A stretch of 37,145 nucleotides of DNA from Perkinsus chesapeaki ATCC PRA-425 (GCA_013115145.1 JAAPAO010000351.1:1-37145); one strand, 5' to 3'; shown: positions 11,401 to 36,731, counted from the stretch's first letter. Notes: a model not told the origin generated them from the sequence alone. Numbers and translations are program-made.

Positions 11401-14400
11401 GTCGCTGTGCTGTCGGTTCGAACACCCCACAGGGACTTGATTGGGTACACCACAGGATCGAGGGCGTACTCGGACAGGATCTGTTTGGCTTCGGTAGCCA
11501 GCAGGCCTGGTAAGGATATCGGTGGCATGTGTTCGGGACACTACCCTACCTGGGAGTGTGAAGCCTTGAAGGCCGACCTTCTCATCTCGAGTTATCTGAG
11601 CGGACATTCATCAGCCAATGGTAGATTTTGGATCAAGGGGGAAAACGCCGCGTTTTTCCCCTAGAAATTGGGGGAGGTAAAAACGGTGTGGATTTGCAGC
11701 GCAATTTTCGTTGACTGTCGAGTAAGGTGGACGAATATGCGCAGTTGGATGAGCTACGGCAGGGTGACCGAAACGGTGTAACTTCACGAGTAGGAAAGAA
11801 TAAAGTAGAAGGAGTCCTATTGCACGGACTCCTGACGATTAGACGAGATCGCGGTACGGATTGTGATGTGTTGTGATTGCTCAAGTAGGTTACCTCGAGG
11901 TAGCTTGTGTGTAGCAGCCACACTGTAGGGCCCCCCAGTTCTCCAAGTTTTAAGTTTGATATGATACAACTGAAGACATCTCCACCAGAGATGGAGGCTC
12001 TGAATCTTATCGAATCACCAGACTGGTCAGTAATAACGAATCTTTCAAGCCCGCCCACACTCAATGAGTTTCGTGGCGCTGCGGTCGGAGCTGATTTGTA
12101 CACCGTGGCCGAAGTGAAATCGAAGCCTATCGGTGAGACGGCTTCAACCAGGACAGTATCCGCCCGGCTGACGCTCGTGAAGGTGATCTGTACGCTAGAT
12201 ATCGCCGTGGCCCTCATCAACTTGCCGACCAAGCGGACCGTGACGTTCTGTAGCTGTGGCACGATAGTCCAGCCCTCGACAGCGTGCGAGCTCTGAATGG
12301 TACGCCCCGAGCCGCCATAGTGGTGCACGAGCCACCAGTTCTGGGTGACGAACGGAGTGGTCGGTGGGTTGAATGTCGACAGGGTAACGACCAAGTCCAG
12401 GTCTCGAGGGAAGGGGAACGGCTCTCGAATGGTTATCGTCATCGAGCCTTCGGAACAGTTCACAAGCGAGTTAGGCAGCACGTTTGCTGTAGCGTCGCCA
12501 GTGTCGCTCAGGAATGAGAAGTTCCAGCATGTCCCGGGCGAATCTGGGTCCTCTAGAGGGAACCCCTCGGGAGCCTGAATCTCGACCACATCACCGTTAA
12601 AGAGCCTGTTGGGGAACTGCATGGTGAGCTCGAGGTTTTCGACAGCAGACAGACCGTTCACCTAAAAAAGATATGGTGACAATCTTCAGAGTTCTGGGCT
12701 ACCTGAGGGTGACCGTGCTCATCCAGATTGGTGAATTCCCAAATGTTAAGCACAGCATTGATGAGGAACCCTTCGACGATATTCTCATCAAGTGCTAACG
12801 AGGGAGTTGCCGACTCCGCAAGATATGTCTGCAGCTTCCACTGGTCTGGAGCCTGTCCGCTCGAGGTCGGGTTATAGACTTTGACCACAATAAGATACTC
12901 CCTCTCAGATACCATCATCAGTGCGCTTCCAAGTCTGATAATCTGATAAAAAAGCTCGAGCTTCGCTCCGCCTCGGCCCAGCGTTACCAATGTGTCGAGG
13001 GCCTGCAAGTCCGGCACCACACAGAGGTAGTCGTTCTCGCTCCACTGTGAGCCTGCTACGTACTCCCCTCGATCGTTGTAATATGGCAGTTCGGTGACAT
13101 GAGCTTGGCAAGTCCCACTGTCGTGGGCGAACTGAAATCCGGTTGGAGCCTCAACTATGAAGGAGCCGCCTGTTCCCCGCGAGTCCGTCGGGTCCACTGT
13201 TTGATGAGGTATGAACTTAATGCTGATGGGATTCACCCTAGGCTCTATATCAAACCCGACAGGTGTCCTGAAATGAGAGATGTCGGAGCTGTCGGAGCGC
13301 GGCGATGTCGCACCTGGCTGTGGAGACCGGGGTGATCATAGCCCTTTTCCCGGTACTAAGTTCAAACCCTTCAAACGGTTCGCTGGTCTCGCCATTGAAG
13401 GCTATGGTCCATTCGTTCACCAACGGAGTGGCATCCGGGTTCCGCACCACTCCGACCCGAATCACGTACAGCTCGTTTTTCTCCAGACCTAAAAACGCAC
13501 CCACCAGGAGTCGAACCAGCGGCCTTTCGCATGAAAGCCTTGCCTGGTAGTATGCTGATCAATGCATTAGAAGCATCACCGGCACAACTCACAATGGCAG
13601 CTTCAGATGGCCAAGTGGCATACTCTGGTGGCCAGCGCGCAGCTCCGCCGAAGACCTCGGCCTCGGCAACTTGGACCGTGTTGAGGCAGTCCTCCGCGAA
13701 GATGAACCCCTCCGGGCCTCGAAGATCGAACAGGAGTGCGGAGCCGTCGCTTCCTGGGACAATCGTGTCGGTGCCAAGACGGAAGGCAAATATGATGTTA
13801 TTGATTCTTCCAGGGCGGTCATCTCGACCGGTATCGAGCCTCTCCTGGCTACTTAGAAATGGCACGCGAGCCTCGACCATTTTCATGGCGATCGGGAAGC
13901 CTGAAGCGACGACCAAGTCTGAACAGTGGGGTAGGTGGATACTGACCTTGGGTGCTCAATCGATAATCGGCCTCCGAAGTGAGCTCTTGAGTATCTTCTA
14001 GTGCGTAAAACGTGAAGCAAAGATTCCACCCGCACTCGGTAGTATCGTCGGTGATAATCTCTGCGACATCGTCCGGGTTCCGAGTGACCAGCCGCCACTC
14101 GTACAGTCCAGCGGTTATGCCTTCCTGACCGGCCGCGATCGTGATCGTTGGAAATGGCCCTATGTTGGTCTGATAGCTGCAGACAGCGTCAACGGGAAAG
14201 GGGCTAGGACCGTTATCGATGCCCAATAGGGTACAGGAAGCCACCGCCGAGAAGCCTCGAGGCATCTCGATCACAAGGCCGCCGCCAGGAGAGACCAGTT
14301 GCGTTTCGATCCTGACGCGGAAGGTGAGCATGTTTTCCTTTCCAGCTGCATTGTATGTGTATGCCACATGAGCGTCGGACAACGCTCTCACGGGCGGGCC

Positions 14401-17400
14401 CGTGACCACGCCGACAAAGGGTCTGCTCTCGGCAGTGACGCCGTCCCATGATATCTCAATTCGCCATTCATTGAAGCTCGACACTGGGTTCCTATCCGGC
14501 ACTTCGATGTCAGCTTCGAAGCCGTAAACCTCGGCGTCGTTATACGTGGCTGAGGCGAAGTGTAGTTGGTTGCCGAGCTCGACGGTTGGCAGCCCACCGG
14601 GCCAGACAGCGGTGATGTTGTAGCCGCCTACCCAATCCATCGTGTCACCAGTGCTCCCCGTGGGATGCATTGCAAACCGGACAGAATTAATATTTCGCCA
14701 TATGAAATTTTGTGGCGCAGTGACTCTTACCGACCCGGTAGCCTCCGCAGGGAATGTCACTGGCGCTACAGTGACCCTGGCATACTGGAAGCTGAGCGAA
14801 CGGGGACGCATGTCTGTTACCGACACGCCGAACTGTTCGCCAGGCACCAGCTCCGCCCCGTACATTCCCCAGGCACGGTGGTCCCCTGTAGGCTCACCCT
14901 CGTTGAGAGGACCGCTGCCAAAGGAGCCATCGATTCTGCGACCATCAGCGTCTCTCGTGTAGAGGAGCCAACTCTCTTGGTGGTCGAAACTGTAGGCGGT
15001 AGGGTTGGTTATCATCACACCGAACGCGTATCTTAGCCCCGCTGTCATGCGACCGTTTACTGTGATCGAGGCCGAACTCGCTGTGCCCACAGTGGTCTTG
15101 GTGCAGCCATTTTCAACGCCCATGATTCGGTGAGTCGGGAGTGTCGAGCCAGTGGCGTAAACGACGGAATCGAGGTGACGGACGCCACACGGATTGGTGA
15201 AAATGAAACCGGCGGGGGCGACAACTTCGACTTTACCGCCGATGCCAACATCCTGTTCAGTCGAGAAAAACACACGGAGAAGATGTGTTGCTCGGCTAAG
15301 CCAACTGCTAGGCTCTATGTGAATCAAAGGCGTCTTGCCGAGCACCTGAATAAAATGTCGACGCCGGGGATCGAACCCGCGTGCTTACCGCCTTATTGCT
15401 AGACCAAGCCGTCGAAGCCGCATCTGACTCTGCATCCTCTTCAATCCCAGCTAAACAACAGCGTAAAAACTACTATTAAACAACAAGACTCACCGTGACC
15501 CTTAAAAACCTCTGTGGTCGCTTGTTTAACTTCACCGCTACTGTAGCCATCACCCGCACCCGCCAGATCCAGCTTCCATAAATTTCTGTCATCAAACGCG
15601 CTCAACGAGTTCGCCGGATTGTTAACAGTGACCTTCAGGAACACCGAGCTGCCCGCATACACGACACCGTTCTCCGGTAACGTGAAGATGCATTTGTTAT
15701 CGGTGAAACTCCAGTAGGTCGATTCCAGGGTGCCTCTCCCCTGCGGCACGGCATCACCAAACTGATGCAAGTCAACCTCCGCGCCTTCTACTCCGACACA
15801 CTCATACCCGCTTGGTAGAGTCAAGGTCATCTTCGCGAAGGCCGCGGGGGCAGCTCCCCTCGGTGTGAATATCGTCGACCCAAGAATGAGCTGGGCATAG
15901 ATAACATTCGCTTGGTCGGACTTATACGGCTTGGCATTGCCGTCCACGCCATTATCAACCAGCCTGGCGATGGTTCGCCCCGAGTCGGGAGACTTCCACA
16001 GGTAGTCTCCAACAGATTCAATATAGTAAGGGTATTCGTCATTGATGTCAGTGACCTCAGCACCCAGGCGACCCGGAAAGAAGCCTCCACTGGGAATGCT
16101 GATGCCAATCACCGAGAGTCTACGCACTTCATCACCGACAAGATCCGGCATCTCCGGAGGCAGTTGTATCCTCACCTGAATGAAGCTATTGTTCTGCCAC
16201 AGGGTTCACAGTTAAGTCCCTAAATTTCGCCACAATTAGTAAAAATGAAATGCCCAACGCGGCATTGCGGCGGTTGCATTGGTCTGAAATACTATCACCC
16301 GCAAAAGTCAACTGGACCAAAAAAATTCTCCATTGTCGTATACACCTTTCCCTCCTCCTCCCACCTTGTTATTCTGAAAACCTTCAACCACAGGCTCTCC
16401 AATACAGCTCTGTATCTCCCCACAAATCTTATTATCCTCTCCAGGTGGTACAGACAAACACACTGCGTTGCAGGAGGCACCGATCTTCCATTCAGTCAAC
16501 GGCCACAGCATGACCCGGATATGATACCCAGCTTTAATTGCACCAGTGAAGAGATTGTCGCCACCTTTAATATCAAACTCTATCGATTCCATATCACCAG
16601 CGTTTATGTAACCTGTCACGGGGATGTAAAAAGCGCGCGCCCAGGTGATCGATTTGTTCCGTACTTACCATTGGTTCCGCCCACCAGAGTGAAGCCCCTC
16701 GAGCCGAAGCTGGGTGTAGCAGTGCCAGCGCTGGGCAGACCCTGTTTCGTCGACAGCTGCGCTCGGCCCATTTCCAGTGCCGAATAAGGATTGTTATCGA
16801 TATCATCGTGCACGAGGAGATGCACATAATCGCAGCTCCGAAGGTCGTCGGGATCACCAAAATTGCCGCAGGTTTTGCTCCCACAACAATCGTCATTTTT
16901 ATAATTAGCGCCGGTGGCCGTCGAACCCACGACCACCAGCTGGTAATTCTGCCCCGGTCGAAGCCCCGACCGTTCCACAAAAATGACTGTGATCTCTCTG
17001 GATGTAATGGTGCTGCCGTCTGGTCTTATGTTCCTATAGTAGCAACCCTGCGGCACCGGGAATCCATAGTCGGCATCATCCGACCACATCTCCCGGAAAA
17101 TTTTTCCGCATGCGAGTTGATTGGCTTCGTGGATCTCATCTTCCTCGGGAATCTCCGCTATGTCGTTCATAGCGACATCGCCGTAGTGTATATCAAACAT
17201 TGCAGGCACCTTAACCATAATTCTCAGGGCCATTCTTCCGGCTGCGGAGGAGTATCTTAGACCCGCGCTGCCGCCAGCCGTTTGAAAGCTGATAATAACC
17301 GGCGCGCGCACTCCACCAGCGGTGCTGGTGCTGACGTGTAAACCGACGCCCTTCATCACAGCAGCACCGACCACCGATAGACGACCGACCTCGTATAGGT

Positions 17401-20400
17401 ACTTCCCAGGCAGACCACTTGGTGCCCAACAGACTTTCATTTGGCTTCGCTCCGCTAAACCTTTTAGCTCCTCTCGCGTGTGTGCCTTATTCGTTCGTTT
17501 CCATTCGCCTTGTGAAACTGTGAATGATGGCGGATTATTAGACCACCCCAATGGTATCGAATAAACTGTGTCGGATACTTTAGTGATCTGATGTCCGATG
17601 TCGTAGGTGTCCTGTAGAGTATTGTCGTTCGCAGAGGAATCACCGTACGGGAACATTCCCATCAGACTGCTCAACTGCTCATCAGAACCTACTACCCGAG
17701 ATATCGGCACCTAGCCTTCCGCGCCAGACGAGGGGAATTTCTCTCACGACTCTCTGGACAAAGCATTTTCGATTGAGTTTTCCCTACTCGACCGCCCGTA
17801 ACCCAGTCAACTGCGACTCGAAACGAACAATTTCACACGGCGCTATTCACTCATTCGTAGGAGTTCCGGTGAAGAAAGTAAATATTTCACATTTTCGGAA
17901 AATCGAAGAAGGGTCCATGGAACCCCACCTGTCCGAGTGGCGGATGACACCATTGCTCTGGATTACATGATCAAGATGCCTTGCTGCCCCAGCGACACCA
18001 TTGAGGAAGCCGACGCACTTTCACACGAATGATCATAACGTTCTCATCACAATTGCGATAATCGAATCAAAGAAGGAATAATTCCGGTAGAATTCACTGC
18101 GCAAGGTCCGCACCCAGGCCTCACATTGCGCTCCACAGGCATAGCCGTTGCCGGTAAGGACAATCCAATCACCAGTGTCGAGTTTCGGGGGGGAAGCAAA
18201 TGTAAGCCGAGTAGTGGTAGCATCAGACATGACTGTGATGCTGGCAATGTAGGCACTTCCTGAGCACTGATTCTTGGCGTCACAATCGACCTAAGATGCG
18301 TGACAGATTATTCAATAAAATGATCAGAGAAATCAGAGTAGATTCCATAACCGGCTTGCAGGTTCCAAATTCGGCGAAGGGATGCAAGCACACGCTCACG
18401 TAGACCGATACTATTTACGCGATATTTCTCCTCCTCGCCCTCATCGACTCTAACACAAATAATAGACGATTTCCGTCGTGCATTATATGGCGATGTATGT
18501 GCGTAATATGCCCTTCTATAATATGCCGGCCATGGGCCCATTTCAAAATCCCAAAATAAAGCCGCTCCCACTTACCCTATCGCTGGCACTGGTAGTGAGA
18601 GGTATATCATCTGAGCTCGTAATAGGCGTGCATCCTGCCGTTGTGACGTCGGGACAGTTCCATTCGTTTGTAGCAACAGCAAGGACTGGTGAGTTGTTAT
18701 TATCGGTGCACTAACAGACACATGCGAACATGGTGAATACGTTCACCGAGTCACCTTAGCGTCGGGCTCGACGATCCTTATGGTGTCACCATTTGACAGG
18801 CCCCACCTGAAGGACACATTCTACTCAGAAATTGAGATCGTCTCACCCAGTAAGTTCAAAGCGAAAAACGATGAAGGTGGAAAATATCCAATTCTGGTCA
18901 GAGTCTGGCCCTCGTACCTGCGCACGCGTGCAAAAAGATTCATACCGATTTTTTCTCACCGTAAATCTTCCAGCAACGACCCAATAGTCGCCATCTGCAC
19001 AGGCATTGTCCGATATAATGCCGCAATAGCAGAGCGCCATGATGCCTGGCTTCTTCACTGTAACTTGCTTTGTGAAATCACCGGCGTTGAACATAAGACG
19101 ATCGTAACTGCGGTACAATGACAAATATACACTAGCAGAAATATAGAAACAAATTAATTGTATGGGAGAAATACAGATATATTTGTTTGGAATAGGACAT
19201 CTTGTACACCTCTATAGCGGTGTTGAAGTGTATATAATACAACAGCCTTCACTGTCACATGACGTAGTTAGCGTGTCACACTCGCAACTGTGATATTATG
19301 ACATCACACCCTCCGACACACAGTGGCGCAGCACGAAGTCTTTGAAAGACAGAAGAGATACGAAAGCAAATTGCCTATAAAATCGATGGAAAATTGAGTA
19401 GGAAAGTGGCCGTAACAGACAAACATCACCGCCAGAAGGTCCAGAAACCTTTATACGTTTCATCGCTACAGTCTTAATGACAGAAATAAAATACTACTCA
19501 AAACGTCCGGTGGTAATAATAGCGAACATAGTATCATTATCAGCCACAGATTGCCAACCTCCGGTAGAACGACCATGCACACTTCGATCAACCTACTTAT
19601 TAGTGGCTCCCTTATACTCACTGGCAGCACTACTCGCTGTCAGACCATCAAGCAGAGCATTGTCATAGGATCTGATAATAATGAACAAGGTATCTTTCTG
19701 CACGCATGCACATGACACAATTCCAAGCTACCTAGCAGCACAGTCAGAATTCATCAAAGGCGTCGGTGAAGAATCATCAACAATTTTAATTATACCTGAG
19801 GGACTCGCATCATCGAATACGTGAACAATACCAATGGAAGATTCAACTAAGTCGCTGGAGAATACCGATTCGCGGTGCCCGGGATGCTCGAACCTCTCGG
19901 CAAAGCCCCTTTCAACGCATCCCAATAAAAGTTAGTTCATCTTCATCGCTCGTCAAACGTTTGCCAAGGACCAGGATACATTGGTCTGCTTTCGTGAGTT
20001 CCATTCGGATGTAACCTCGTTTTGATTGAGATGATGTGATGACCCGGAATGATTCACGAACCCCGCCATTGAGCGGTCTCACCTCCATCAGTAAAGCCTA
20101 ATGCTTCTTCATATATTTCTGGCTTATAGAGAGCCACCGCAGCTGGCTCATTAACGTACCTTAGGAAAATACAAGTCCAGCAACAACGCTGGAAATCACT
20201 TACTGTATAAAAGGACGATCAGCTGTGTCAGTGGCAGCCGAGGCCAGCCGGAACGGCAATAAGCGAAGAATGCCAACTTTAAAATAGTCACCTAGGTAAG
20301 CATGTCAGTCTCTCATCCCAAAGGCCGTGGGTTCGATCCTCACCGTCGCCATTGCAGCCGCTATCACAATAGCAAATGTCAAAGTACTTCATTGCGTGGA

Positions 20401-23400
20401 AGCTCCGTCTTTCATAGGCGTTCTCGCCAGCGGCAAATCCCAGCGGCTCCAAGATGCTGCCAAATTCCTTATAGTCCTGCCGCGCCCCACCACTCATCAG
20501 ATCTAGCATTGTAATGAAATCTCCGTAGGAATATTTAGCCAACCTGCGGTAGCAGAATCCGGCAAAGTCTCAATTAATGTTGACATGCTTCCCGTCTTGC
20601 AGATATGTGTATCACTCCAACTCGGAGCCTCTCCTGTGTTACCTGGTAACAGAGTGGGATGCTCTCACTCGATTGTCGGGAGTGGCTCACTATAGACTAT
20701 CACTCGATCGCTCCATAATTTACCACACTACGACTAAATTATTCACATTGCTCCTGCAGTTTTTACGGAAATTCCCGCGAAAAATTTCCAAAAATTTCCA
20801 TCATCCTCACCAGGATTGATGGAGCACCACAAGAACAGGAAACGGGCGAAAACACAGCGGAGTAAAGATTAGTAAAATTCAGCGCTTTTTCTCACAAAGA
20901 CTTACGCTGCATAATACTAAACTCGCAACGATTATCTTTTTATACTCAATAGGCAAAATGTGTTGCGGCAACCTACTGGGATCAGACCAGGAAGCCAGCT
21001 GCAATTTGAATCTATTATTGTCTGCATTTGCACAAGCATCACTCGGGCAACCAATTCTAATCTTGAATAGATGATCGGCAGCCACGGCGATGTAGGGTGT
21101 TGAACCTGATAAACTAACAATGCCGCGATTGGCTGTCATACCGACACTTACTAAAATTGAAATTTAATACCGTAACAATTATACATGTATGCTATAATTT
21201 TACACGTCGATTCCAGACTGAAATTCCACATAGAAATTTTACACTTAATTTTACTCAAATTCTTTTACTAGAATTTCACTCTCAAAATTTTGCACTTCCA
21301 TTTCGTGCGAATTGTACTTTAAGAAATTTTACGCTCGAATTTCAAACTGACATTTTGCACTTCGATTTTGGATTGCAATTCTATTTCCGAAATGTTAAGC
21401 GACATTTCACCAACGTTTACTTAAAGAAAAGTTACACACGGAACTTATCGCATTTCTGACATTCCCTATTGTCCAGCTTCTTACAATCGTCATCGCCAGC
21501 TGCACAGAGATCTGCGGTATAATAATGTACCACTCCAATCGATTGGGTGTATTCGGTAGTCTGATCACATTCGTCATTACCACCAGAATTATCATAACTT
21601 GGGCAATAACATGCGGCCACGGTGTAACTGAGCACACGGTGCTGGGTTGAACCATGGACGTGTGCGGCTCGACAGGGTTTAAGATTTGGAATAGATGCTT
21701 CGCACTAGGAATTATTAAAATAATAAAGTCAATGAGTTACAATCACCGAAACGGCTGCTACGATGTCCGCCATGCAAAAAAGAATACTCTTTAGTAAATC
21801 GACAATTTTTTTGACTGATTTTGACCCACTTTCCGAATCCGCCAAACTTGCCATTGAGTAATATTAGTAGATATTAGTAGATATAGTAGATTAATACAGT
21901 AGACTAAATAGATTTAGTAGTATAATAGTTTAGAGATATAGTAACATTTTCAGGGATACCAAGCACTGGACCTGTAAGTAAGTTATACGTCAGTAATGAC
22001 AGGGAACGAATGTCAGTAGACATTTTAGGTCCCTATACGGTTTCCTTTGGGACGCCGCCACACTCATCGGGACTTACGGTCTGAAGGTGTTAGCATCCAG
22101 ATTCTTCATGCCCTGTGGAATGGTGATAACCATTTTACCGTACTTCCCAGCAACAACAGAGGACGTAACTGAAAGCGACTTTTCAGCAATTAGCCGCGAA
22201 TCAACCTCCAAAATATCTTCTGAGGGGAAGATGCAAAAATTTATACAAAAAAACTGACCGTCGTTCTACCGGAAAATTTCCCTGTTGATCGGTGGGACAA
22301 GGTGAGCCATCCTATATATAGACTAGAGATGCTAGAGCGAAAACTGGAACTGAAATATCTCCCTACCTGGCGCTATCAATCTTGATCCTCCTGAGCACCC
22401 CTCTCCATCGGGACAAATGAACTGTGCAGCGGCCGCTCCCGTGCCACAGAGACTCTGTGTCACTCCGCTCACAACACCATCGGTGGTGTAAGTCGTTGCC
22501 CACTCTGCTGTCCATGTGGCCTTGCCAGCATTTCCTGTGGTGCGCTTGTAGAATCCCTGACATAGTAGAACCGTACAAGGTCCAAAATAGGAAATTTCTA
22601 TGCAGATTTTTCCTGGAAAATATTTCTAGGCTTTTTTATGGAACATACACAACCATTGCTGAGATAACTGCATGATCTTATGTTGGAAAGAAATCCGGAA
22701 TTTTTTTGGAAAAAATTACAGTTTTTTTTCAAATACACTGAAATTTCTTTGCTGGGAAGAAAAAAAATTGTGCAAATTTCGCATCCGTCAGTTGTGAAGG
22801 TTACTCGTGAAGCGATCGGATCTCAGTGCTCAACTGAGGTAAGCCGACAGGCATTAGACTATAGAATGGATACGTAAAATGCCCCATCCCAGATTCGAAC
22901 CCGCGTCCACCGACCTGATTTGCGCCGGTGAAGTCCATCTCACAGCTGCCTTTGGAGGAATGCTGCTTCCTCAACAGATAGCAAGTCATCTCAGTTTTCG
23001 CCAGACAATCGTCGGCATCGCAGTCAGTGTAAATTCCCGTTACTAGTAGAGTCGCGCTCGGTACCTGTCAACCCCCAGTTCACATCGCTGTTACACTGAC
23101 GCGCCTACATCTCCGTGGAAGGCTCCGAATGTGCCCGTGTCGGTATAACACAATTTGAATTCGCCTCCCATCCGAAAGTTCAACAGTCCCTCGGTTGGCG
23201 TGGCTATGAAAGCACCAATGAAAATCCCCTCAACAGCTTGTCTCACTGTCAGGTTGAGCCACCAGACTTGGTGAATTAGCGGTGGTTGCGGTAGGCATGC
23301 CGGTATTGGTGGACCATGGGCTGTTGACGTAGTTGCCCGCTTTGTGGGATGACCCAGGAGCGCATGCTCCGGCCTGAAGAACGGAGATAGTTTTGAAGTC

Positions 23401-24425
23401 GAATGTCATCAGCCGTCGTCTGCGGCCGTGGAGGTGTTAATTTTTGATCCCTACTGTGAACTTTGCACAGGGAATTGGCTTGAATTGATATTTAATGTCA
23501 ATGCTGTTATAAAGAATATAATGCCAGTATCCCTTACCCATGCATCATCGGCCGACACAGAGCCATCGACTATGTTGAGCCGTCCATAGCTAGGGCTCCA
23601 CGAGTTACCAACGCCGAGGTAAAGCTCGACCGATGTGATAGGCACACCCGAATGAAGCTTCGTCGAGGAAGTCGCTGAAAGACGGCCACTATTGTGACCG
23701 ACAATCCTTCCTGTTTTAACCTGGAGTCGTGGCGCCGTTGAGACGGATTTCCGCGTCGATTGCAAGCTGAGTGAAGCTGGACGTGACGACTGCGAGCCTC
23801 CGTAGCTGTGGTTTGTCGGTCTGTTAAGGACGGTAATTAGTAGAGATTGCACGCATGCGTTGTTACTGTTGTAGCGTTCTGCGGCGGTGGTGCTGCTGCA
23901 TTACAGGTGAAAAGGGTTATTATATGTAGAGGGAGCCGACTCCATTTCATATGGTACAAGAGGACGAACTGTTAATTACCAACAAGATAAGTGATGATGG
24001 TCTACGAGTTGAAGGGGTTATGTACAACCTCAATACATTAGTATTATGCCACTTTCTCATTACATTTATATATTATTTTCATGCCACTTTTTCATTACTT
24101 CTATATATTATTTTCATGCCACTTTTTCATTACTTCTATATATTATTTTCAGGCCACTTTCTCATTACATTTATATATTATTATTCACCATGGTTGTAAA
24201 GGTCATATAGAACTGGTCTCTTACTATTAAAGAGTTCAGCACATTCAACCTTACTCCATCTAGGCGATTCAGGTCGACTGTTGAGTACAACAGCAACCAC
24301 AACAGTCCAAGAAATCGCCAATGCAATCTTAGAGAGCCCCCACCCGACACGCCCATATGAACGCCTGTTTTCGGACGGTCATCTTGAGTTTTGTGGCGCG
24401 CGCCGTTTACATTGCATCTTGACAT
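8500..24425 (-). CDS. Very large multi-exon uncharacterised protein locus (probably one gene, possibly more); Cys-rich 'CYC' repeats toward the N-terminus, beta-strand-rich Ig-like repeats toward the C-terminus; probable surface or secreted protein
   Basis: A chain of minus-strand ORFs (23451, 20288, 18843, 16616, 16308, 15441, 13849, 13371, 13250, 12658, 11633, 11202, 9159) that I could join in frame across short introns in several places, e.g. ...SNKA|VLGK..., ...ILP|GLEKN..., ...LSTQ|DLVV.... Recurrent ICYCDSGC and LCYCG...C...GP motifs, and xxxPxGFxF strands. Hydrophobic segment LHWRFLGLLWLLLYS near 24300. The ends are uncertain. Confidence 0.6.
13489..13543 (-). other. 55-nt GC-AG intron containing a tRNA 3' half (sense): GCTGG TTCGACT CCTGG TGGGTGC G TTTTT AG
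   Basis: Splicing joins ORF 13371 (ILP-G) to ORF 13250 (GLEKNELY) in frame. Canonical T-arm/acceptor spacing, with the T-run serving as the polypyrimidine tract. Confidence 0.85.
15346..15388 (-). other. 43-nt intron containing a tRNA 3' end (sense): GCGGG TTCGATC CCCGG CGTCGAC A TTTT
   Basis: GTAAG...TTCAG; splicing gives AWSSNKA|VLGKTPLI in frame. Confidence 0.88.
20292..20343 (+). other. 52-nt intron of the minus-strand gene that is an antisense tRNA-Met-like fragment (D-loop end to T-arm)
   Basis: Plus strand TAGGTAAGCATGTCAGTCTCTCATCCCAAAGGCCGTGGGTTCGATCCTCAC parallels the typical elongator tRNA-Met pattern TAGGTAGCGCGTCAGTCTCATAATCTGAAGGTCGTGAGTTCGATCCTCAC (recalled). Removing it gives CNGDG|DYFKVG in frame. 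Confidence 0.85.
21170..21430. repeat. Degenerate AATTTT-tract cryptic repeat in a long intron
   Basis: Recurring AATTTTAC / AAATTT / ATTTTGC units about every 10-16 nt. Confidence 0.55.
22859..22914 (-). other. 56-nt intron containing a tRNA 3' end (sense): GCGGG TTCGAAT CTGGG ATGGGGC A TTTT
   Basis: CAG|GTCGG...ATAG|TCT; splicing gives DFTGANQ|SNACRL. Confidence 0.82.
24046..24185. repeat. 35-bp AT-rich minisatellite, 4 copies
   Basis: ATGCCACTTT(C/T)TCATTAC(A/T)T(T/C)TATATATTATTTTC at 24046, 24081, 24116 and 24151. Confidence 0.95.
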
Positions 24426-24925
24426 TTCTCAATGGCACGATCGATTTGGCGTCACGTCACGGCTCCCGTGTCCCCACAATTATCTATCAACTTGTAGGCT
24501 TATCTCTGTGCTTTGCTGTCATCAATCCACCTAATTCGATCAAACCTCTCTGTTGTGCTCCAAGCTAAGATACGCTCCTATTCACATACACCCTCAAGGA
24601 GGAGGAGAGCAATTCCATTTCTCCGTGAAAAGCGCACGCCCCAAGAGACGCATGATTGTTACTCCTGCACGTGAACGGCTTTCCATGTTTATTAAATAAA
24701 CGCGTGCAGTAAACTTTATTTCGGCTAATTCGACTTCGAAATAGGATTTGCCATGTGTGGATCCCGAACTAAGTTCGGTCAGTAGGTTATCGTTTTGGTG
24801 CAACCTCCACTATTTTTGAAACCGCTGGGTGCGAAGTTTGAAAAAATGTCATTAAAACTGAGTATGTTATAGAGCGCGTGAGATCGTTGAAAGGCATTAT
24901 GAAGAGGTCTGGCAGGCTGTTTAAA

Positions 24926-27346
<2,421 letters not shown>

Positions 27347-27711
27347 TTGGTGGAGGGAAAATCTTCACAGTGCGCAAAGATGCGCCTGTGTTGGAGTTTG
27401 TTATGTGATTGTTACCTGCAGTGACTTTGACCACTCGTACGGTCTTATTGATAGTGTAATTATGACACAAAATCTGTCCCCATCTACAGTTCGATTGAAA
27501 TAAGGTCTTCTCACCTGCCCGGTGCGTTGCGTTCCTTCCTGGGAGCTCCACGGTTGAGGGAACTAGGGTCAACTATGACGGCTACGGTGGCCGTGCCGTC
27601 ACCACTCGGAGCTGGGCAACCCTTACCGAGGTATCGAGAGACAGCATCCGGTGTTACGATCTCAGACAGGCAAAACCGAATAAGGCGAGGTAGCTGTGAA
27701 AGTTGAGGGAA

Positions 27712-30167
27712 ATGTGGTATGAAAAATCAGGAGTCACCAGACGGTTTCATGATGTTGATTATCTAGTGGAAGTGGAGATCGACGGTGACAATTTAAGCGC
27801 CTCCTGCGAAGACAGATTCGAGGGGACTCGGTAGGGCAGTACAGGAAGCCCTGGCGGCTGGAGTGCTGTCCCCATATAGGTGGGTGTCATCATTCTCCAG
27901 CCGATTTATCGAAGAGATAACCCACCGCACGGGCAACTTCAAATCGTTCGCGGTGTTCGTTCAAATGTTGTTCGACGCTCTGTTGGACTCGGATGAGCAG
28001 GCGGCAGTCAGTGACAGTAGCAGTACGGTTACGGTTGATATATTGACGTAATGCCCTCGCTGGGGATCGAACCAGGGTGGATTTATCTGGTTAGGGGCAG
28101 AGATCTCGAGCTGTTACGTCATCGAAATGGAGGAAGCTCAGCTGCAGCACAAATGACAGCATCGAGGAGTCCTCCTCCTCCTGATGGTGATGCCAAACGA
28201 TATCTTATATTAACGTACCAGGTAGTAGTAGGAAGGCTGGGCGGCTGGGCGGATCAGCTTAATTCGGTTTTCTTGAACTCATCGAGCGACCACTGAGATG
28301 CTGCTGGGAGCGCGATACTTCCTGTCCTGAGTGGAGCGCACATGGCCGATATAAGGCAGGAATGGCTACACCTCCTTAAATCCCTGTCAGTTGCTGTTAT
28401 TTAGTGACTTCTGGGTCATTCCTCATCTGGATGACCGGGATCAGATAGTAGTTTCCCCGTTTAGTTGTGGGCATTTATTGCGTTACCAAAGCGGCCTTTG
28501 GAACTCAACAAGCGGGCCGGTTCCGACGCTCTGGCCTTACCCTTCTGGGGTGTTCATAGATCTTAAGACTCGAATCGTTAAAGTGTGCAGGTCTCCTATG
28601 ATAGAGTGCACTATCCCTTGGCCTTGGCCCGACAGGAGCCAGGCTCGGATGTAGGGGCTTTATTACGGACGATAAAACGGCTAAGTCGGGAGCTGAAGGT
28701 GAAGCAATCTCGCGTGGGTTGCCGGAGGAAGGATTCAGGAAGCGTATCGAAGCGGGCGGTCCAACAGCAAGATGACGCGATCGGTAGACAGCGATTATGT
28801 CGCCGGAGATGCTCTGTTGAGGTGAGGCCGGCTCGTGTGGGGGGTAGGGTACGACTCGATCAGGCAAGGGCCTTCGAAGAAGCTTCTGGGACAACTAGAG
28901 GAAGAGAACGATAGACTAGCAAGACGGTGCGCGGAGCTGCAAGAGGAGCTTGAGAATCGTAGAGGTAGTAGCGGTGATGAGGGGTGATGGGATGGTAAGG
29001 TTAGGAGGACGGCATAGAGGAGATCATACAGCTGAGTTGAAGCGGGTGAAGGAGAATAATGCTAGATTGCAGGCGGAACTGAGGCAGATGAGAGAGACCA
29101 AATTGCGGCTCAGTCAAACGGTAATAAAGGGGGGGGCTAACTTGAGATTTGGGAGAAATGTGGTATGAAGATCCCATCAGGCAACCGTGGGCTCGGTAGA
29201 CGTGCAAGGAAAATATCTTGTTCAAAATGAATCTCGGTTGGTTGGGCCGTTCTAGTGGACTCCAGAGAGCGACTGACCGAATATTGGTGTAAAAACCGGG
29301 CGGAATTTTCCGAGCATGTCCGAAATTCCTTGTAGAATTTGCATGTAAAATCGAACGGCAATTTCTCACTGTTTTTTCTAACTAAATCGATATTGGTTCA
29401 TTTTCAGCATCGGGCTGAAGTAGATAAGCTAAGAAGAGAGCTCAACGCAGTTCGAGGCCAGGAACGGCAACTGAAATCCAAAGTAGGTGGGCAATGGAAT
29501 TAGCGCGCGCCATGGTGATCGATTCCAGGTTCGATCGCTCGAAAATGATCTACTGCGGCAAAGGAGCAGGGCCCCTAGTTCGGCAGGCTCGCTGCGTTCA
29601 GTGGGCAGCCGAGCAGCATCCCCGGTATCGCCTCGAACACATATGATGAATAGATCGTCTCGGGCCGCCAGTAGCAGTAATCGATCACCTTCTCCGACAA
29701 CCAGTAGGGGCCGTCGGCCTCAAAGTGCGGCGTTGCCGAGGCGGCCACCGAGCACAGCGTCATCTCGATCGAGAGGGAGCGTTGGTTCAGCTCCAGTTAG
29801 GTCTACACGGTCCCCCAGCCCTAGCAACTATGCATCGGGATACGTCAGTCCGTATGCCCAGAGACCATCACCAGCTTCAAGGCGGCCATCACCGTACAGA
29901 GGAAGCGAGTACAGACCGTCTCCAGTACGGAGAATGGATACGAGAGCGCCGTCACCAGTGCGAGGCCCGAGCCCTACGAGGCCTAGAAGAAGCGACAGCC
30001 CAGCGCCTCGGCCCACTCCGCCAGCTCCGCTGGTGAGGCCGGTGCCGCCGACGGTTCAGAAGGGAGTGGTGGCAACGGAGGGCATGAAAACAGCAGCCGA
30101 GGTGTCGGATATCGACGCCCGGTTGATGGCGCTGCAGAATTTCTTGAGAAATACGATGAAGCCGTGA
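27712..30167 (+). CDS. CCDC61: CCDC61/VFL3 (SAS-6-superfamily basal body/centriole protein), multi-exon
   Basis: FHDVDYLVEVEIDG...RWVSSFSSRFIEEITHRTGNFKSFAVFVQML...VDILT|GRDLELLR...KRYLILTYQ|VSYDRVHYPL, then a coiled coil, a Ser/Arg/Pro-rich tail and C-terminal DIDARLMALQNFL. All match CCDC61 hallmarks. Confidence 0.92.
28048..28094 (-). other. 47-nt CCDC61 intron with an antisense tRNA 3' end: CCTGG TTCGATC CCCAG CGAGGGC A
   Basis: GTAAT...TTAG; splicing gives VDILT|GRDLELLR, a conserved CCDC61 segment. Confidence 0.87.
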
Positions 30168-30317
30168 ATGTATTATATTGTATTATTATTCGTATAAAGT
30201 ATAATTCAGCACATGATGGTAGCAGAAGCGGTCTCAATGAAATGGGAATGGTTGAGTTTTTATATGGGGATAGCTAGAGGTGTCAGAAAATAGTTAGGGA
30301 AGATTTAAGCAATCATA

Positions 30318-31468
30318 ATGCAACCATCAATAAGAAACACCTTCTTAACATTCGATGATGAAGCTGCACGAGCTGCTGGATGTCAACGTAGACAGAAGAA
30401 GTCTCGAAGTCTGCCGGCCAAGAGCACCTGTGATCGGCAGAAATTGGCACTTACCTCGCTGCTTTACCGCGCTGGCAGCGGGCCGGCTAGGATGGAAGCT
30501 CCACAGGTTTGTCCACAGATCACTAGGATATAAGTGTGTTCGAGGGGTACTAGCTTGGTCCTAGTAAATTAGTAGTACTAATACTCTTCAACGCAGAGAT
30601 GCAGGTTACTTAGTACTGGATCGGCCAGTGACGTTTTTTGTGTGACAGAAAGGCGTCAACTAGGGATCGCTGCTAGTGGTAATGCTTTGTGGAACAGCAA
30701 TGAATGAATTGCTGCATTTCTAATGGAGAGGTCTTTCTGATTGAAGATGAAATCCCCAAATAGCCCCTTTCTAACTCTCCATTAATACGCAACCAATCTA
30801 AACCGGGCTCTGCGGTCATTTCGCTAGTGTTAAGGTTTCAGGTATCTTTAATAGACATCGCAGAAGCCGACGAGTCTGCACCAACGACCTCATCAATCTA
30901 TCGTCTCAATCCCCTAACGCTGTTGAAATCCGACTCCAACAGCACATGTTCGAATGTATTGAACAGGGAGCTGAGTCCGAGCCCGAAGGCAGCGCACTCA
31001 GTACATAAGAAAAAGGGCTGGCCATCCCACATCGACCTTGACCGTCTCAGCGAGGACCATCGAGACACGTTATTGGCAGCGATTCCACAGGACCCAATTT
31101 CGGACCAATTGCTTTCCTGTGGAAGCATCCCTCATATCTTAGGGGCCTGCCGCCCATGCGTTTTCGCGAGGAACTTCGACAGGCCTTGCCAGTACGGCGC
31201 AGCATGCCTGTATTGCCATTACCCCCACGAAGCAAAGAAGAGAACGAGGAAGACTAAGAAGCAAAGAGCCGAAGCGAAGCTGGCGGCGGCAGCTGCCGTC
31301 ATGGCCAAGTCCACTGGTGACGAGGATCTCTTCGAAGAGGACGCCTCCCCGATACCGAGCGAGAACACTGAGCAACATGATCCGGAGAATATTTATCGCG
31401 AGTTGATGGACCAAGTGATGCTGGTGTGCGCGCAGAACTTCGGCATTACTCCGAAAGCCAGTCAGTAG
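30318..31468 (+). CDS. Dinoflagellate-type C3H1-like zinc-finger protein with an N-terminal 'IRNTFL...SRSLP' motif; probably 2 or more exons
   Basis: MQPSIRNTFLTF...KSRSLP, followed by CGSIPHILGACRPCVFARNFDRPCQYGAACLYCHYPH and a basic segment. The link between the two ORFs is inferred. Confidence 0.65.
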
Positions 31469-31699
31469 GCTGCGCGCGGAGGAGCACGTGTTTGTCGTCC
31501 TGTTTATTTCCGTTCGAGACAGCACCGTTGAGATTTCTTTTCATTTTTGATAATATATATAATTGGCGCCTTTTTGGTTTATTCTACATGTTATCCTACT
31601 GATGATGTTGTCCACAAGTGGAGGTTTTGTGTTCAGTGTCCCCAATTCTATAATACCGCAGTTCAATGGTACTTTTATCGTGGTCGTCATCTCGACGGC

Positions 31700-34600
31700 G
31701 GTCACAGAGCTGCCCCTTCAACACTGTGCTTAATAACAGTGACATACATTTCATTTTAGCGGAGTATCTCACTTATACAGATTGTGTCGCTCTGCAAGGG
31801 ACTTGTACAGGATGGCAGCACGCTTTCCGAGGTAGGCCGCCGCCGTCGCGTCCTGTGTGCTCTGTGCTCTCTATCGGGTTTTAATGCACATCGCTTGTAC
31901 TACAGCATCTCTCGGTCATGTTCCCGACTGGCGCGCATCAAATTATCCGAGCAATACAACGTGTCTGCTACCTAGCCGTAAAATATTTTCTTGGAAGATC
32001 CCAAATAATTTCAATTTTGGAGCTTTCTCGTGGTGCTGTTTCGTTCCTTTTTGCCGCTAATCGAAGGGGAACTTGATATAGAGTTAAATGTGAACGATGA
32101 CCTCGTGTACCTTCTATGCGTAAATTAGTAGTTCCCCGCGCCTGCTTCACAGAAAGCATCTTTTTGCTGTGCCTCTTGAGGTTTATGGTGATTTATCTCG
32201 ATAACATAAGTTAAAAGTCAATAAGATACATGACATAGTAGCAGGAGGGATGGCAAAATAAGCCAATACAAAGCAGTTCGGTTAAGCAATTAAATCGAAT
32301 TAGTTGAGACATACGACCTGGCAGCAATGAACATCGAGTTTGAATCACTGCTCGCTCTGGAGGTCCGGCGAATTTCTTTGCGATGAAAAAAGTGTCTCGA
32401 CAAATACCCGTTCGATACATGCCATCCTCCATGTGACGGCGTCACACGACGCCGTATGGCCAGGAATTTGCCAAGGATCGTATTGGGTAGTGATTCAAGA
32501 AGCATGTGGTCTTTGTTGTTGTTGTCAGAGGAAGTCTGGCAGCTTTGGCGAAGAATCTTTTATTTCAACTACTGTTTTAAACTGGACACAACGCCGTCGC
32601 GGTCTACGGAAGGTGAATTGGTCATTGGCAGGCTAACGCTTCATTCATCGCGCTGGTTTTCCGATCGTTCTTCGCGCCACATCGGTAGTTCGCACCTATT
32701 TTTACATATTTGTTAAATCTTAATTGGCGGAATCGTCATTCTTAGTGTCGTGGATTTCGACCGGACCAGGGCTGGTCGAAGAGTTCCCGGTTGTTCGACT
32801 AGCAACCCCTACTGGAGAGCCAGGCTTCCCGGTGGATAGTCTCCGCCAGTTTTGTGAACGAAAACGCACGTGTTGATATGAGACAATACTCATGTTTAAT
32901 ATATCAGATTCTGCAGTGTGCGATGCTCGACCGTTCGGTGAGCAGGCCGTTGGGTGGAGCCTGCTTGTTCAAGACCATCACGATGATTTTATTTGGAGAG
33001 AGGGTGTTGTGGTCGAGTACAGCCCTATTCGGGACTGGTAAGTCTGGTGGGTTATTGAACATTCGAAAACCTAGCTCAATGCACCTGATATACAAATTTA
33101 ATGGGATGATTCTGTAATAGTTATCATAGACCTCCCTGCGTAGAAATAATAGAACTTATCGTATGTCTACTATAATATACGTATAATATACTATATATAA
33201 CTTACGTATCTTTAATATGGTACTGTATGTTCTATTAAAAAGGCGTATTATTTTATAGACTACTTCTCCAATGTCACTTCTTTGATCATGATATTTTGCC
33301 AATTGGGCAACTGCTAGCTACTCTAATATTAATACTAATTGGAATGTATAACTTACAGTATGATATTTATATTTGTCATCTTCTCGACAGATGGACTTGT
33401 GTCGTTTTCTGTCCCAGTTACAGAATTCTCTACTCTGACCCTGCGGTCCAGTCGATGACTCGGTTAGAGTCCCTCCAGGCCGGCTTGGATATGCATGAGA
33501 GGCCAGACGGCGAGGAGGAGTTCCCGCCGACCTTCTGGGAATCTGAGAGCCACACGAATGAATACCGCGTTCGTCGAGGGGGATACGTGAAGACGATGTC
33601 TCGGTTTAAGTGGATGAAGGCACCAAATGGGAGCGGCCATCGACCACCTGCTGTAACCAATGTTAACCGGTTCCCAATCAGCGGCGATAGTGCACTGGAG
33701 ATGCCACTCGGCGGCCTCAGCTGGAAGAGAGCTGTGGCGCAACTGTCTGCTGAGGTGAGAGATGCTTGGTTGTTGGCCATAAAGCTGCCGACGTGCCCCC
33801 GTCGGCAATTCCGTGGCGGCGGAAAAGCGAGTAGTTGTGTTGTATTCAGTCTGATTAGTCCGCTGTGTGTCGTGTGTGGACTCTAGGCGCCGCGTGGAAG
33901 AGTAGCACTATTCCCTTATGAAGAGATAGTCGATCGTCAAATTTGGTGGCCAAGCAGATGACACTCGACCTGTTATAACGAAACTGGGCCCAGGGGACGG
34001 GGATTTCTATCTCTTCCTCAGGTAACGAGTGAGCCGGTATTGACGATACGTGACCATGATGATGAGGTCCTTTATGCCGACTTTAGCCCTTGTGGCAAGT
34101 TCCTCGCCACCGCCAGTCGAGACGGGTCATGTGAGCAAAATACACAGCGCGGGGTTCGAACTCACGACCTCTTGTTTCCCAGGCAACGTGTATGCCCTGT
34201 TCGACCCATTGAGCGATTCCAAGGAAGAGTTCGACTTCGATCGCACTGTCTGCTATGACTTCTTGGATCTCTCCGAGTTCTCACCGGGGCTCCCGGATGT
34301 CATGGTTGATGCCTCCACGTGGCGTTGGGCATCCGATGCCAGCATCGCCACGCGCCTTCTCTGTAATTCTCCGTACCCGTTGGTTGCGGTATTCTCGATT
34401 AGGTAAACTGAACTGCGGATGGACGATCAGAGCGACCAGGCGCTCGCAGGCCGACGAGCCCGCAGACGCTGAGCGCGAGAAATTGTACCCCGGGAGAGTG
34501 ATGTGGGCGCCGGACTCCAGCTCCATCCTGGTCGCCTCCACCGGCCCTCTGTTCTGGGTCGACATGCGCTCTCTCATCGCTGGCCGAGGCCCTCCGAGAC

Positions 34601-36731
34601 TTATCACTAGTATCACCCAGGTGGGCAGCTTCAGTGGCCCAACGGAAGCCTTAAGGAGTTGCCGTTCAGACGCCCAGCGACGTATATGGTGGGTTCCTGT
34701 ACTACCCTCCAGAAGGTTCTAGTAACTTGCCGGAGGAAGACTTCGAGGGAAGAATCCCGCTGGACGATCGACTCTGTGTGCTATCATGTAACAGGCTTTG
34801 AGAAGTCGCGTGCATTTTGGGAAGACAAATAGCACTGCTACCTGTTTTGGTAGCGGTATTGAAAACAGAGGTTCACAGCAATGTGTTCATCGTGGGTCTG
34901 CCGTTTAAGCGCGAAATAATTTCCAGTTTCGGAAACCCTGTTGGAGCCATACGCCTGATAGAGCGCCAACCACGCAAGCCACTGTTGCCGTCGATGTATC
35001 ATAGAGAGTAAAAGTTTTCTTTATATATATGGAAGACGAATTGTCTGTGCTTCTTCAAGCTATATATGAACAAGCCATTGGTGCTCTCCGTTACTCTTTC
35101 CCTAGGTACACGCGTTATTCCAGTCATTGACCGCGATACAGGGGTATCCAGCCTTACCCAGCGCTTTGAAGTCCACGCCAGGCCGCCACCACCACCAGCA
35201 GCAGCACCGCCCTCGGAAGGCGGCGCGCGGTTTGCAGGCGCTGCTGCTTCAGCGGCGTTTGATATCAATCTTGGACATCAGGCTTTGATCAGAGCCATCT
35301 CCGGTAACACTTCCTGAAATAAAGGTCCTGATTATCTGTTTCTAATGTCTTACAAAGAGAGAGTTCTGAGAGTCTTCCCGTGTGCTACGACTACTATATA
35401 GTTACTATTTCTCTCTGGACTCGTAATGTGCCTAATGGCACGAGAAGTCTCCCTTTATCCTAACTAGTGCGCAGGCAGAGGATTCTCCTCTTCTTGTTGC
35501 CAACTAGTTGGGGCCCGAAGCTTTATACCGTTCGAAGGCTCTCATCTTCTTGGTCTACGAGAAAGGTCTAAAAAGTGGTCAGTGGGCCTTAGTGAGCGAA
35601 CACCCTCCATTACTAGTAGATTGGCTCCTTGAAATCTCTCACATCTGGAGGCAGATTACATATACAAGTGTTATTATTACATATCTTATAGCATCGCATC
35701 TAGGCGTGAATTCGAATCACATGCTACTTCATTCTCGCCTCAGTTGAGCCTCGTCAACAGCTTATGGTGGGCCTTAGCGGCGTCAAGCTAACCATGATGG
35801 ACCAAGTTGTCCTTGTGGATCTTCGTAACACAGTCACAGTCAGCCGACCTGTGCCGAAGAGTAAGCCGACCTGTGCTGCGTCGGTCCGGTACCTCCTCTC
35901 CCTCTAGGTCTTCGTTTCCCAATCCGACTGTCTTCGCCTCCAGTTCGTATAGTTGACTTCTCCCGTTTTGCGTGTAAGATTATCTTCTCTGAGTTACGCT
36001 GGTATCATGGTCCTCGTAGGCTGTTTGGCTTGCCGTTTCACACCTTCCGCTGAAGGCCTCCTCCTCAACTTGAGGAAGTTTGTGAACCACGCTCTCACCG
36101 ATAAGTTCTACGAGGATCCCTCGCCAGTGCCGGCCATCGCGCCTGATCTTGACGTCAATATGGAGGCTTTGCTGCTGCCTGTGGTTCCCGGTGAACCGGA
36201 GAAGCCTGCTCGAACTGACAGTGAGAACATTACTGTTATGAAAGGGCACCACGCCTACACTACTAAGAGCAGCCCTTTCATCATAATGCCTGACGGTAAG
36301 TATCCTGAATACCATCACCAGACTCACGAGGCTGCTTTGTCCGGTGGAAGTGATGCGTTTTACGTGCCTGATAGAGCTGAGTCATCGCCTTGTCCGTATC
36401 GCTCTCTTGTCCAGGTGTCCTGGGCTCACGCCAAGTTGTATCAAGCGGCGGTGAAGATGGTAACGTGTACACCTGGAGTCTTCTCGGCCGTCACAACAAC
36501 AGCAGCAGCAGCGGGACCGCCGCCCCTCTCGTATGTGCTGGTAGACTTGCTCATAGCGATACTGTAAATCTTGTTAACTACTGTCCCTCAAAGCATGGTG
36601 TAATGGCCAGCAGCTCCGACGATAATACTGTTGTCATTTGGCTCAGCCAGCAACGATCGTTCTACGCTGGAGTCAGTCGCCGTTGTTTATCAGTAGATAC
36701 TTGTGTACCCTTTTCAAATGTTTCTCCTTGA
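31700..36731 (+). CDS. FBXW5: FBXW5-like F-box/WD40 protein, multi-exon
   Basis: F-box-like LNNSDIHFILAEYLTYTDCVALQGTCTGWQ, then LWRRIFYFNY, DHDDEVLYADFSPCGKFLATASRDGSC|NVY, LNLRKF...PAIAPDLD, MKGHHAYT, VSSGGEDGNVYTW...RLAHSDTVNLVNYCP...MASSSDDNTVVIW. These are collinear with FBXW5 motifs. The start is uncertain, and inclusion of the 31.7-33.3 kb part is inferred. Confidence 0.75.
34131..34182 (-). other. 52-nt FBXW5-like intron with an antisense tRNA 3' end: AGGTC GTGAG TTCGAAC CCCGC GCTGTGT A TTTT
   Basis: GTGAG...CCAG; splicing gives ASRDGSC|NVYALF, completing a WD40 repeat. Confidence 0.88.

Follow-up and report, generated by a model that had tools for sequence, protein, structure and literature searches.

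Isolated B boxes that stand without a full tRNA gene are known as extra-TFIIIC (ETC) sites in budding yeast and mammals and as chromosome-organising-clamp sites in fission yeast. Known ETC sites number from tens to a few thousand, and most of them are intergenic or lie in promoters. Here, we describe a set of short sequences from a 37,145-nucleotide (nt) stretch of Perkinsus chesapeaki ATCC PRA-425 (hereafter, the window) that may be sites of this kind. Each is a fragment of a tRNA-gene 3' end inside an intron (hereafter, a relic), and together they are candidate B-box-only DNA sites kept by selection. In ETC sites, related species retain the B box, which acts as DNA, such that orientation relative to RNA polymerase II (Pol II) genes is irrelevant, and the relics appear to share these properties. 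Unlike ETC sites, the relics show a visible tRNA origin in their variable loop, C72-A73, and T run, and they are found within tiny coding introns at a density of about one per 3-8 kb.

Three further systems resemble the relics in part. Introners, found in Micromonas, Aureococcus, fungi, and dinoflagellates, are inserted sequences that likewise make up most of a short intron, in many unrelated genes and in either orientation, and introner-like intronic elements have been described in Amoebophrya (PMC7789003). However, introners consist of near-identical copies that bear terminal repeats or target-site duplications, and they represent recent lineage-specific gains, whereas the relics are all different, have no terminal repeats, and occupy positions shared by three species; neither near-identical copies nor recent gains were found among them. 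Short interspersed elements (SINEs) derived from tRNA, and fragments of tRNA retropseudogenes, are dispersed and often intronic, as the relics are, but SINEs keep a 5' tRNA head containing the A and B boxes, followed by a body and a tail. The relics keep only the 3' third, have neither A box nor tail nor any other of these SINE parts beyond the B box, and differ further by their oligo-T, the absence of CCA, and a B box conserved across species. Finally, Dada DNA transposons, which are 4.7-11 kb long, target tRNA genes in Perkinsus marinus and are inserted within intact tRNA genes (PMC3706591). Although genus and tRNA-gene link are the same, and footprints of such an element had been proposed as a source in an earlier reading of the sequence, nothing that we found ties the relics to Dada (no transposase search was made), since the window and the two orthologous loci described below contain no intact tRNA gene. 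In the literature that we searched, no paper connects Perkinsus introns to tRNA-like sequence, B boxes, TFIIIC, or introners.

The window was compared with the TDO locus of Perkinsus olseni (L003) and that of P. marinus ATCC 50983 (L004), both reached through a TDO exon and syntenic with 15.5-36.3 kb of the window, and with a P. marinus-like contig (L001) that is 93.7% identical to L004 and spans a large minus-strand gene. In alignable, mostly exonic blocks, the window shares 70.4% identity with P. olseni and 68.6% with P. marinus, and the latter two share 71.2%; as identity is about 70% in every comparison, the window represents a third, roughly equidistant Perkinsus species. Introns were anchored across species by their exon flanks, and the TDO structure was resolved by hand against the P. 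olseni and P. marinus TDO proteins. Gene models from dynamic programming are unreliable because codon bias is weak, and they were used only for a rough intron count (~100) and as the source of control introns. RNA from the same species came from two small runs, which have zero depth at 26074-26857 and 32900-35300.

A reading of the window from its sequence alone (hereafter, the sequence-only reading) had reported ten tiny introns in which a T arm, an acceptor strand, and a discriminator follow each other at the spacing of a tRNA. We scanned both strands for GTTCGANNC followed by 11 nt and a purine, and found 13 matches, compared with 2.4 expected from dinucleotide shuffles; none of 100 shuffles reached 13, and 10 of the 13 matches are the places that had been reported. 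In addition, we built a profile hidden Markov model (HMM) from the ten relics, with 34 columns that represent tRNA positions 44-73 and four trailer bases, and used reversed sequence as decoy. The ten relics score 18.0-28.6 bits, the next match in the window 4.8 bits, and the best reversed-sequence match 4.9 bits, and this gap makes the relics a discrete class. By eye, several other introns had seemed to be eroded relics, including the L001 orthologs of the introns at 13489 and 15346, but such a continuum of decay was rejected, as nothing lies between 4.9 and 18 bits. The ten introns are listed below by window coordinates.

13489..13543, minus strand: 55-nt GC-AG intron of the large minus-strand gene; sense relic at 13492-13525; HMM 18.0 bits
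15346..15388, minus strand: 43-nt GT-AG intron of the large minus-strand gene; sense relic at 15352-15385, followed by TTTT; HMM 28.6 bits
20292..20343, minus strand: 52-nt GT-AG intron; antisense relic at ~20300-20343, from an anticodon-loop-like part to the T arm; HMM 18.9 bits
22834..22914, minus strand: 81-nt frame-keeping intron (the 22859 site); sense relic at 22876-22909; HMM 22.7 bits
26211..26253, plus strand: 43-nt TDO intron; antisense relic at 26216-26249; HMM 18.6 bits
26356..26399, plus strand: 44-nt TDO intron; sense relic at 26364-26397, ending in ...ACATTTTAG; HMM 22.9 bits
26500..26548, plus strand: 49-nt TDO intron; antisense relic at 26510-26543; HMM 20.8 bits
26813..26864, plus strand: 52-nt TDO intron; sense relic at 26822-26855 with an intact 5-bp T stem; HMM 22.8 bits
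28048..28094, plus strand: 47-nt intron of a CCDC61-like gene; antisense relic at 28048-28081; HMM 23.1 bits
34131..34182, plus strand: 52-nt intron of a WD40-repeat gene (called FBXW5 in the sequence-only reading); antisense relic at 34137-34170; HMM 19.6 bits

The columns that the search pattern did not force are tRNA-like: C48, C72, and A73 are each present in nine of the ten window relics, and the variable loop is AGGNC-like. TTTT follows immediately after the discriminator in six relics and CCA in none; relative to the host gene, five relics lie in sense and five in antisense orientation, all as first described. All ten differ in variable loop, stems, and acceptor strand, in agreement with the earlier view that they are not copies of one element, and they stem from several different tRNAs. 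The same tRNA hallmarks are found in 12 relics of L003 and L004, which lay outside the training of the profile. Over all 22 relics, C48 is present in 91%, C72 in 86%, A73 in 82%, and T at positions +1 and +2 in 86-91%, and the consensus reads aggaC cCgGG TTCGAtC CCcGG nnnnnnC A TTTT. The relics extend from position 44 (in one case 32, where the sequence is anticodon-loop-like) to position 73, and T-stem pairing is complete in two of the ten window relics and eroded in eight. The derivation of the ten window inserts from tRNA-gene 3' ends can thus be regarded as secure on sequence grounds, as the sequence-only reading had proposed. Because oligo-T is present and CCA absent, the source was a gene or primary transcript rather than a mature tRNA.

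The relic introns are real spliceosomal introns, as judged by their GT-AG or GC-AG borders, by frame and homology after their removal, by introns at the same positions in other species, and by cDNA splicing seen for orthologs. Four of them lie among the ~13 introns of TDO (plus strand, ~24,900-27,340), and removing these four yields one frame that matches P. olseni and P. marinus TDO over every junction. Specifically, removal of the 26211 intron gives the junction ...RRM/YGSPEFF, as in both TDO proteins, that of 26356 gives AELTEK/WLERLP, and that of 26500 gives ...EQTVKQ/VFG, while removal of 26813 restores the TDO match from SRG on (the next 19 residues). In a P. olseni-like mRNA contig, ...GAACTGACGGAAAA is joined straight to the base corresponding to 26400, so that the 26356-ortholog relic intron is removed. 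In a P. marinus-like mRNA contig, ...GAGGGGAGAAAA is joined to 26255, with removal of the 26211-ortholog relic intron, and this contig is spliced at the ortholog of the 26813 intron as well. Same-species cDNA contigs splice four TDO introns without relics (25371-25786, ~25894-25938, 26951-27002, and 27153-27198).

Outside TDO, removal restores the frame at 13489, 28048, and 34131, and the introns at 15346 and 20292 are backed by conserved flanks. The splice sites can abut or overlap the tRNA-derived part: at 28048, in the gene whose L003 ortholog carries the CCDC61_N annotation, the 5' splice site GTAA adjoins the relic discriminator, and at 20292 the T stem contains the 5' splice site GTGAG, which is the complement of the stem's 3' strand. 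The borders and frame restoration first assigned to these introns hold with three corrections. The donor of the 13489 intron makes it a GC-AG intron. At 22859, the 56-nt version (22859-22914) breaks the frame, and it is the 81-nt version (22834-22914) that keeps it, although in-frame read-through is also possible from the open reading frame. At 20292, the final 8 nt of the tRNA match had been placed in the adjacent exon; these are conserved coding sequence in the other species, and the match there is probably due to chance.

All ten intron positions also hold an intron in P. olseni and/or P. marinus. In four cases (20292, 26211, 26356, and 28048), a relic is present in all three species in the same orientation. 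At 20292, the orthologous introns (54 nt in L003 and 57 nt in L004) keep it from a loop-like CTYYCAT through the T arm. The orthologs of 26211 (72 and 61 nt, respectively) carry antisense relics of 21.8 and 24.9 bits, and those of 26356 (80 and 57 nt) carry sense relics of 18.5 and 18.9 bits. At 28048, the antisense relics score 14.7 bits in the 72-nt L003 intron and 5.8 bits, with a TTCAATC loop, in the 52-nt L004 intron, and the variable loop TCCAC is identical in all three loci. A fifth relic, at 34131, is shared in the same orientation with P. olseni (59-nt intron, antisense, 11.9 bits); L004 ends before this gene. In total, the window-built HMM finds nine matches with E<0.05 in L003 and L004, five of which fall in orthologous relic introns on the matching strand, and the chance of this is, by a rough estimate, ~5e-8.

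The other five positions hold an intron without a detectable relic in the other species. These orthologs are often close to the window intron in length: 55 versus 55 nt for 13489 (same position in L001), 43 versus 42-45 nt for 15346 (45 nt in L003, 42 nt in L001 and L004), and 52 versus 45-48 nt for 26813 (48 nt in L003, 45 nt in L004), with 26500 standing at 214 nt in L004 and ~240 nt in L003. At the 22859 site, homology stops at the same ...CAG in L003 and L004, and the sequence that follows is without a relic. In both species this following sequence starts with GCACGA, and the two resemble each other, which suggests further GC-AG introns. The relics seen only in the window appear no younger than the shared ones (2-5 versus 3-5 T-stem pairs). 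Given that all ten positions are occupied elsewhere, none of the ten introns is lineage-specific. Judged by these shared positions, the introns date back to the common ancestor of three deeply diverged species, and so do the relics in at least half of the cases.

These results bear on the original proposal that fragments of tRNA genes or of pre-tRNA cDNAs, for example as break-repair filler or 5'-truncated reverse transcripts, are inserted into exons and become new introns, with the relic forming the intron body. Several features fit such an origin: the 3' end is always kept and the 5' part lost at varying points, as in 5'-truncated copies, and oligo-T without CCA indicates descent from a gene or primary transcript. 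In addition, the relic takes up 34 of the 43-44 nt of the tiniest introns, TTTTAG can act as the 3' splice site, GTRAG in antisense relics is directly followed by the trailer complement, and a duplication at 26813, of marginal significance, resembles a target-site duplication. Against it stand the introns that other species hold at all ten positions, often with the same length, the five shared relics, and the state of the window-only relics, which are no better preserved. Moreover, relics also occur where they make no intron, namely in a long intron and in an intergenic or untranslated stretch. Insertion as an ongoing process is not what the comparison shows, and as an explanation of the relics we consider it unlikely. 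An ancient seeding of introns by tRNA fragments in the stem lineage is possible, being neither shown nor excluded here, but such a burst leaves the intact B box unexplained.

The relics that make no intron stand at places where the window has no relic. In P. olseni, one lies at L003 13594-13623 in the 370-nt first intron of the CCDC61-like gene, and another, ~135 nt past the TDO stop, is common to P. marinus (L004 13040-13120) and P. olseni (L003 13060-13130). Consequently, relics are not limited to tiny introns, which in the window species make up most of the non-coding DNA inside genes. We also considered a position rule as a mark of birth, given that antisense relics lie near the 5' splice site. 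This was rejected: sense relics lie there too in longer orthologous introns, and the placement arises because the branch-point region needs room.

To what extent the relics are constrained can be read from 13 orthologous relic pairs, aligned without gaps and compared by segment. Identity is 86% in the T-loop, 74% in the 3' strand and 66% in the 5' strand of the T stem, 69% in the variable loop, 69% at the discriminator, and 65% in the trailer, as opposed to 37% at acceptor positions 66-72. A hand count of the pairs that include the window gives 84% for the loop and 33% for the acceptor. As a control, 18 orthologous intron pairs without relics have an identity of 0.55, versus 0.50 with shuffled partners, which indicates that neutral intron sequence is saturated at this species distance. 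Two blocks are therefore seen to be kept, namely positions 48-65, which hold the B box GGTTCGANNCC, and C72-A73 with the T run, and the six bases between them are free. Over the 22 relics, positions 52-62 reach 77-100% consensus, save for the free positions 59-60, as in a B box that is conserved above its surroundings. T-stem pairing, by comparison, is unmaintained, with 3-4 of 5 pairs in most relics and the stem-base pair lost in the consensus.

This contrast between segments is difficult to obtain if the relics are neutral tRNA pseudogene fragments, with their likeness across species due to chance, slow decay, or repeated gene conversion by real tRNA genes. Such genes are numerous, have the T-arm sequence in common, and could template conversion, and half of the relics are unshared between species, as neutrality allows. 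However, comparison of the same species shows randomised sequence in the adjoining acceptor bases and in ordinary introns, conversion would repair T-stem pairing and acceptor sequence, neither of which is observed, and the shared orientation and position in five introns is beyond chance. We therefore regard neutrality as very improbable.

We instead favour selection on a DNA site, to which we assign a probability of roughly 0.5: the relics would be B-box-only sites read by TFIIIC or by another B-box-reading factor. Under this explanation, old tRNA-gene 3' fragments would have been present, in either orientation, in very short spliced introns before the split of the three species. Purifying selection would since have held positions 48-65 and C72-A73 with the T run, while drift randomised the intervening bases and the remainder of the intron. 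The constraint most likely acts on double-stranded DNA, because the relics occur in both orientations, T-stem pairing is unkept, and neither an A box nor a 5' acceptor strand is present. That it represents selection on a DNA site is the most likely interpretation of the conservation pattern. A putative TFIIIC, or another B-box-reading factor, would read the site, as at the ETC sites of yeasts and mammals, and we name TFIIIC, the established reader of the Pol III B box, because the conserved core is identical to that consensus. The sites would then sit in the sole non-coding DNA of compact genes. The sequence-only reading had offered retention as intragenic TFIIIC sites as its second choice; of its two proposals, this one fits better, given a conserved B-box part beside randomised acceptor bases and introns, with TFIIIC as the putative reader.

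The same pattern could, in principle, reflect a constraint on the pre-mRNA, whereby the T-arm hairpin, its complement, or the near-palindromic UCGA core aids the splicing or folding of introns near the minimum length. The introns that hold the ten window relics measure 43-81 nt, a hairpin remains one when complemented, and in the 43-52-nt introns the T-loop A is 13-28 nt from the 3' splice site, a plausible distance for a branch point. Yet the pairing of the T stem is not maintained, the relic stands ~55 nt from the 3' splice site in longer orthologous introns, and sense and antisense RNAs present different sequences. Furthermore, one relic conserved in two species sits outside any coding intron, and about nine in ten introns do without a relic. 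A role at the RNA level is, in our assessment, quite unlikely.

Similarly, the relics could be short RNA polymerase III (Pol III) units, in which TFIIIC at the B box recruits Pol III to transcribe from a start in the adjacent exon or intron as far as the T run, with a small RNA or interference with Pol II as the outcome. The observation in its favour is C72-A73-TTTT at a fixed distance from the B box, even in antisense relics, where the T run cannot be a polypyrimidine tract, and it is the conservation of this block that leads us to retain the explanation. The block could mark Pol III termination or, alternatively, the downstream reach of a B-box-binding module. Other parts of a tRNA gene were sought with negative results. 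ARAGORN found no tRNA gene in the window, L001, L003, and L004 (89 kb), and Rfam gave no significant tRNA-like match in the window, the only one being mascRNA (E=7). Upstream of the 22 relics, A-box-like sequence and 5'-acceptor complement occur no more often than in shuffles. An intact intronic tRNA gene is thus not what the introns contain, as cloverleaf, 5' acceptor strand, D arm, and A box were not found. A hidden full tRNA or minihelix, as hinted at by the mascRNA match, which paired exon GUGUCCA with the 26813 acceptor strand, was likewise rejected, with complements at shuffle level in the 22 relics. With A-box-like sequence at shuffle level, no tRNA-like fold, and several conserved relics that lack a T run, Pol III units seem an improbable explanation.

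Several observations weigh against selection on a B-box site. The T-loop identity is biased upward, because orthologous relics were recognised partly through the T-loop, although the contrast with the acceptor bases is unaffected by this. Five of the ten relics are unseen in the other species, and thus the constraint is not universal or turnover is high. The density of one site per 3-8 kb in the three species, with four in 1.5 kb of TDO, is far above that of known ETC sites. In addition, some conserved relics have no T run (the orthologs of 26356 and the set at 20292), and P. olseni and P. marinus are perhaps not fully saturated with respect to each other, as their relics in the 26211 intron share 6 of 7 acceptor bases.

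If the B box is truly selected, regulatory DNA sites of Perkinsus hide in introns of 40-60 nt, in which nearly all bases already serve as splicing signals. This would be unusual intron biology, with the content of a tiny intron functional beyond its length, and unusual Pol III biology, with intragenic B-box-only sites far denser than in any known system. The interest of the relics rests on the cross-species evidence for constraint on the content of 43-56-nt introns; as the relic introns are not fresh births, they offer no evidence for ongoing intron gain. A much broader version, which we find doubtful, would have thousands of selected tRNA-derived B-box sites in the tiny introns and other non-coding DNA of Perkinsus protein-coding genes. 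These would form a dense intragenic network of Pol III-factor sites that ties TFIIIC or Pol III to Pol II transcription, splicing, or chromosome folding, maybe seeded by an ancient wave of tRNA fragments that also made many introns. The relics constitute a convenient test bed, with the same site in both orientations, with and without a T run, in three sequenced species of a culturable and transfectable oyster and clam parasite.

Some further sequences near the relics deserve mention. At 26813-26880, the intron start GTAAGATTGGTCA (GTAAG..TGGTCA) recurs at the start of the next exon, GTAAGGAGATGGTCA, in the manner of a target-site duplication; it is absent from the two other species and, by a rough estimate, only marginally significant. 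In P. marinus and P. olseni, a short conserved hairpin, GGGTC TTACTY GACCT, stands before the relic past the TDO stop, and the window at ~27440-27520 has only the remnant CAGTTCGATTG beside a similar hairpin-like string, in a different order.

Two look-alikes were noted in the large minus-strand gene, whose long exon has database matches to Perkinsus proteins only. At 16902-16935 (minus strand), within a 364-codon exon (16619-17710), the coding sequence contains a T-arm look-alike, TGGTC GTGGG TTCGAC..., which is also present at the orthologous L003 2802-2817 and L004 2374-2402, with HMM scores of only 4.8-9.5 bits; either an exonised relic or a chance match would account for it. At 16613-16668 (minus strand), an intron of 54-56 nt keeps the core ATCGATC..(5-6 nt)..GGCGCGCGC in the window, L003, and L004, with an intron identity of 0.63-0.67, compared with 0.50 in shuffles. 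The relic HMM does not detect this intron. Its core resembles a T-loop in which T54 has become A, a GC-rich block is conserved at the acceptor place, and in the window TTTTT follows.

The assembly of the window contains one gap, which touches none of the ten relic introns and falls in the following TDO intron.

25371..25786, plus strand: 416-nt GT-AG TDO intron without a relic, with ~36-nt tandem repeats (...GAAAGGAAAGGGGATTATATAAGATATATTATA...), holding the assembly gap 25518-25614

A same-species cDNA contig (X1) joins 25370 directly to 25787, and the flanking exons match TDO; hence, the two sides of the gap belong to one transcript. Further along in TDO, the intron at 26114-26162 has the unusual donor GTTGGA. 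Only with it removed does ...SVQFR continue into IIEVMM..., as it does in the P. olseni and P. marinus proteins; otherwise the gene looks frameshifted. Beyond Perkinsus, database sequences from Bdellovibrionota and Halobacteriovorax come closest to Perkinsus TDO (45-48% identity), which may reflect either the make-up of the database or a bacterial origin of this now intron-rich gene. Lastly, the intergenic segment 1246-1366 of the window gives weak Rfam matches on both strands (MIR8706, 32.8 bits, E 0.0096; Wolbachia sRNA 46), which suggests a long hairpin or inverted repeat.

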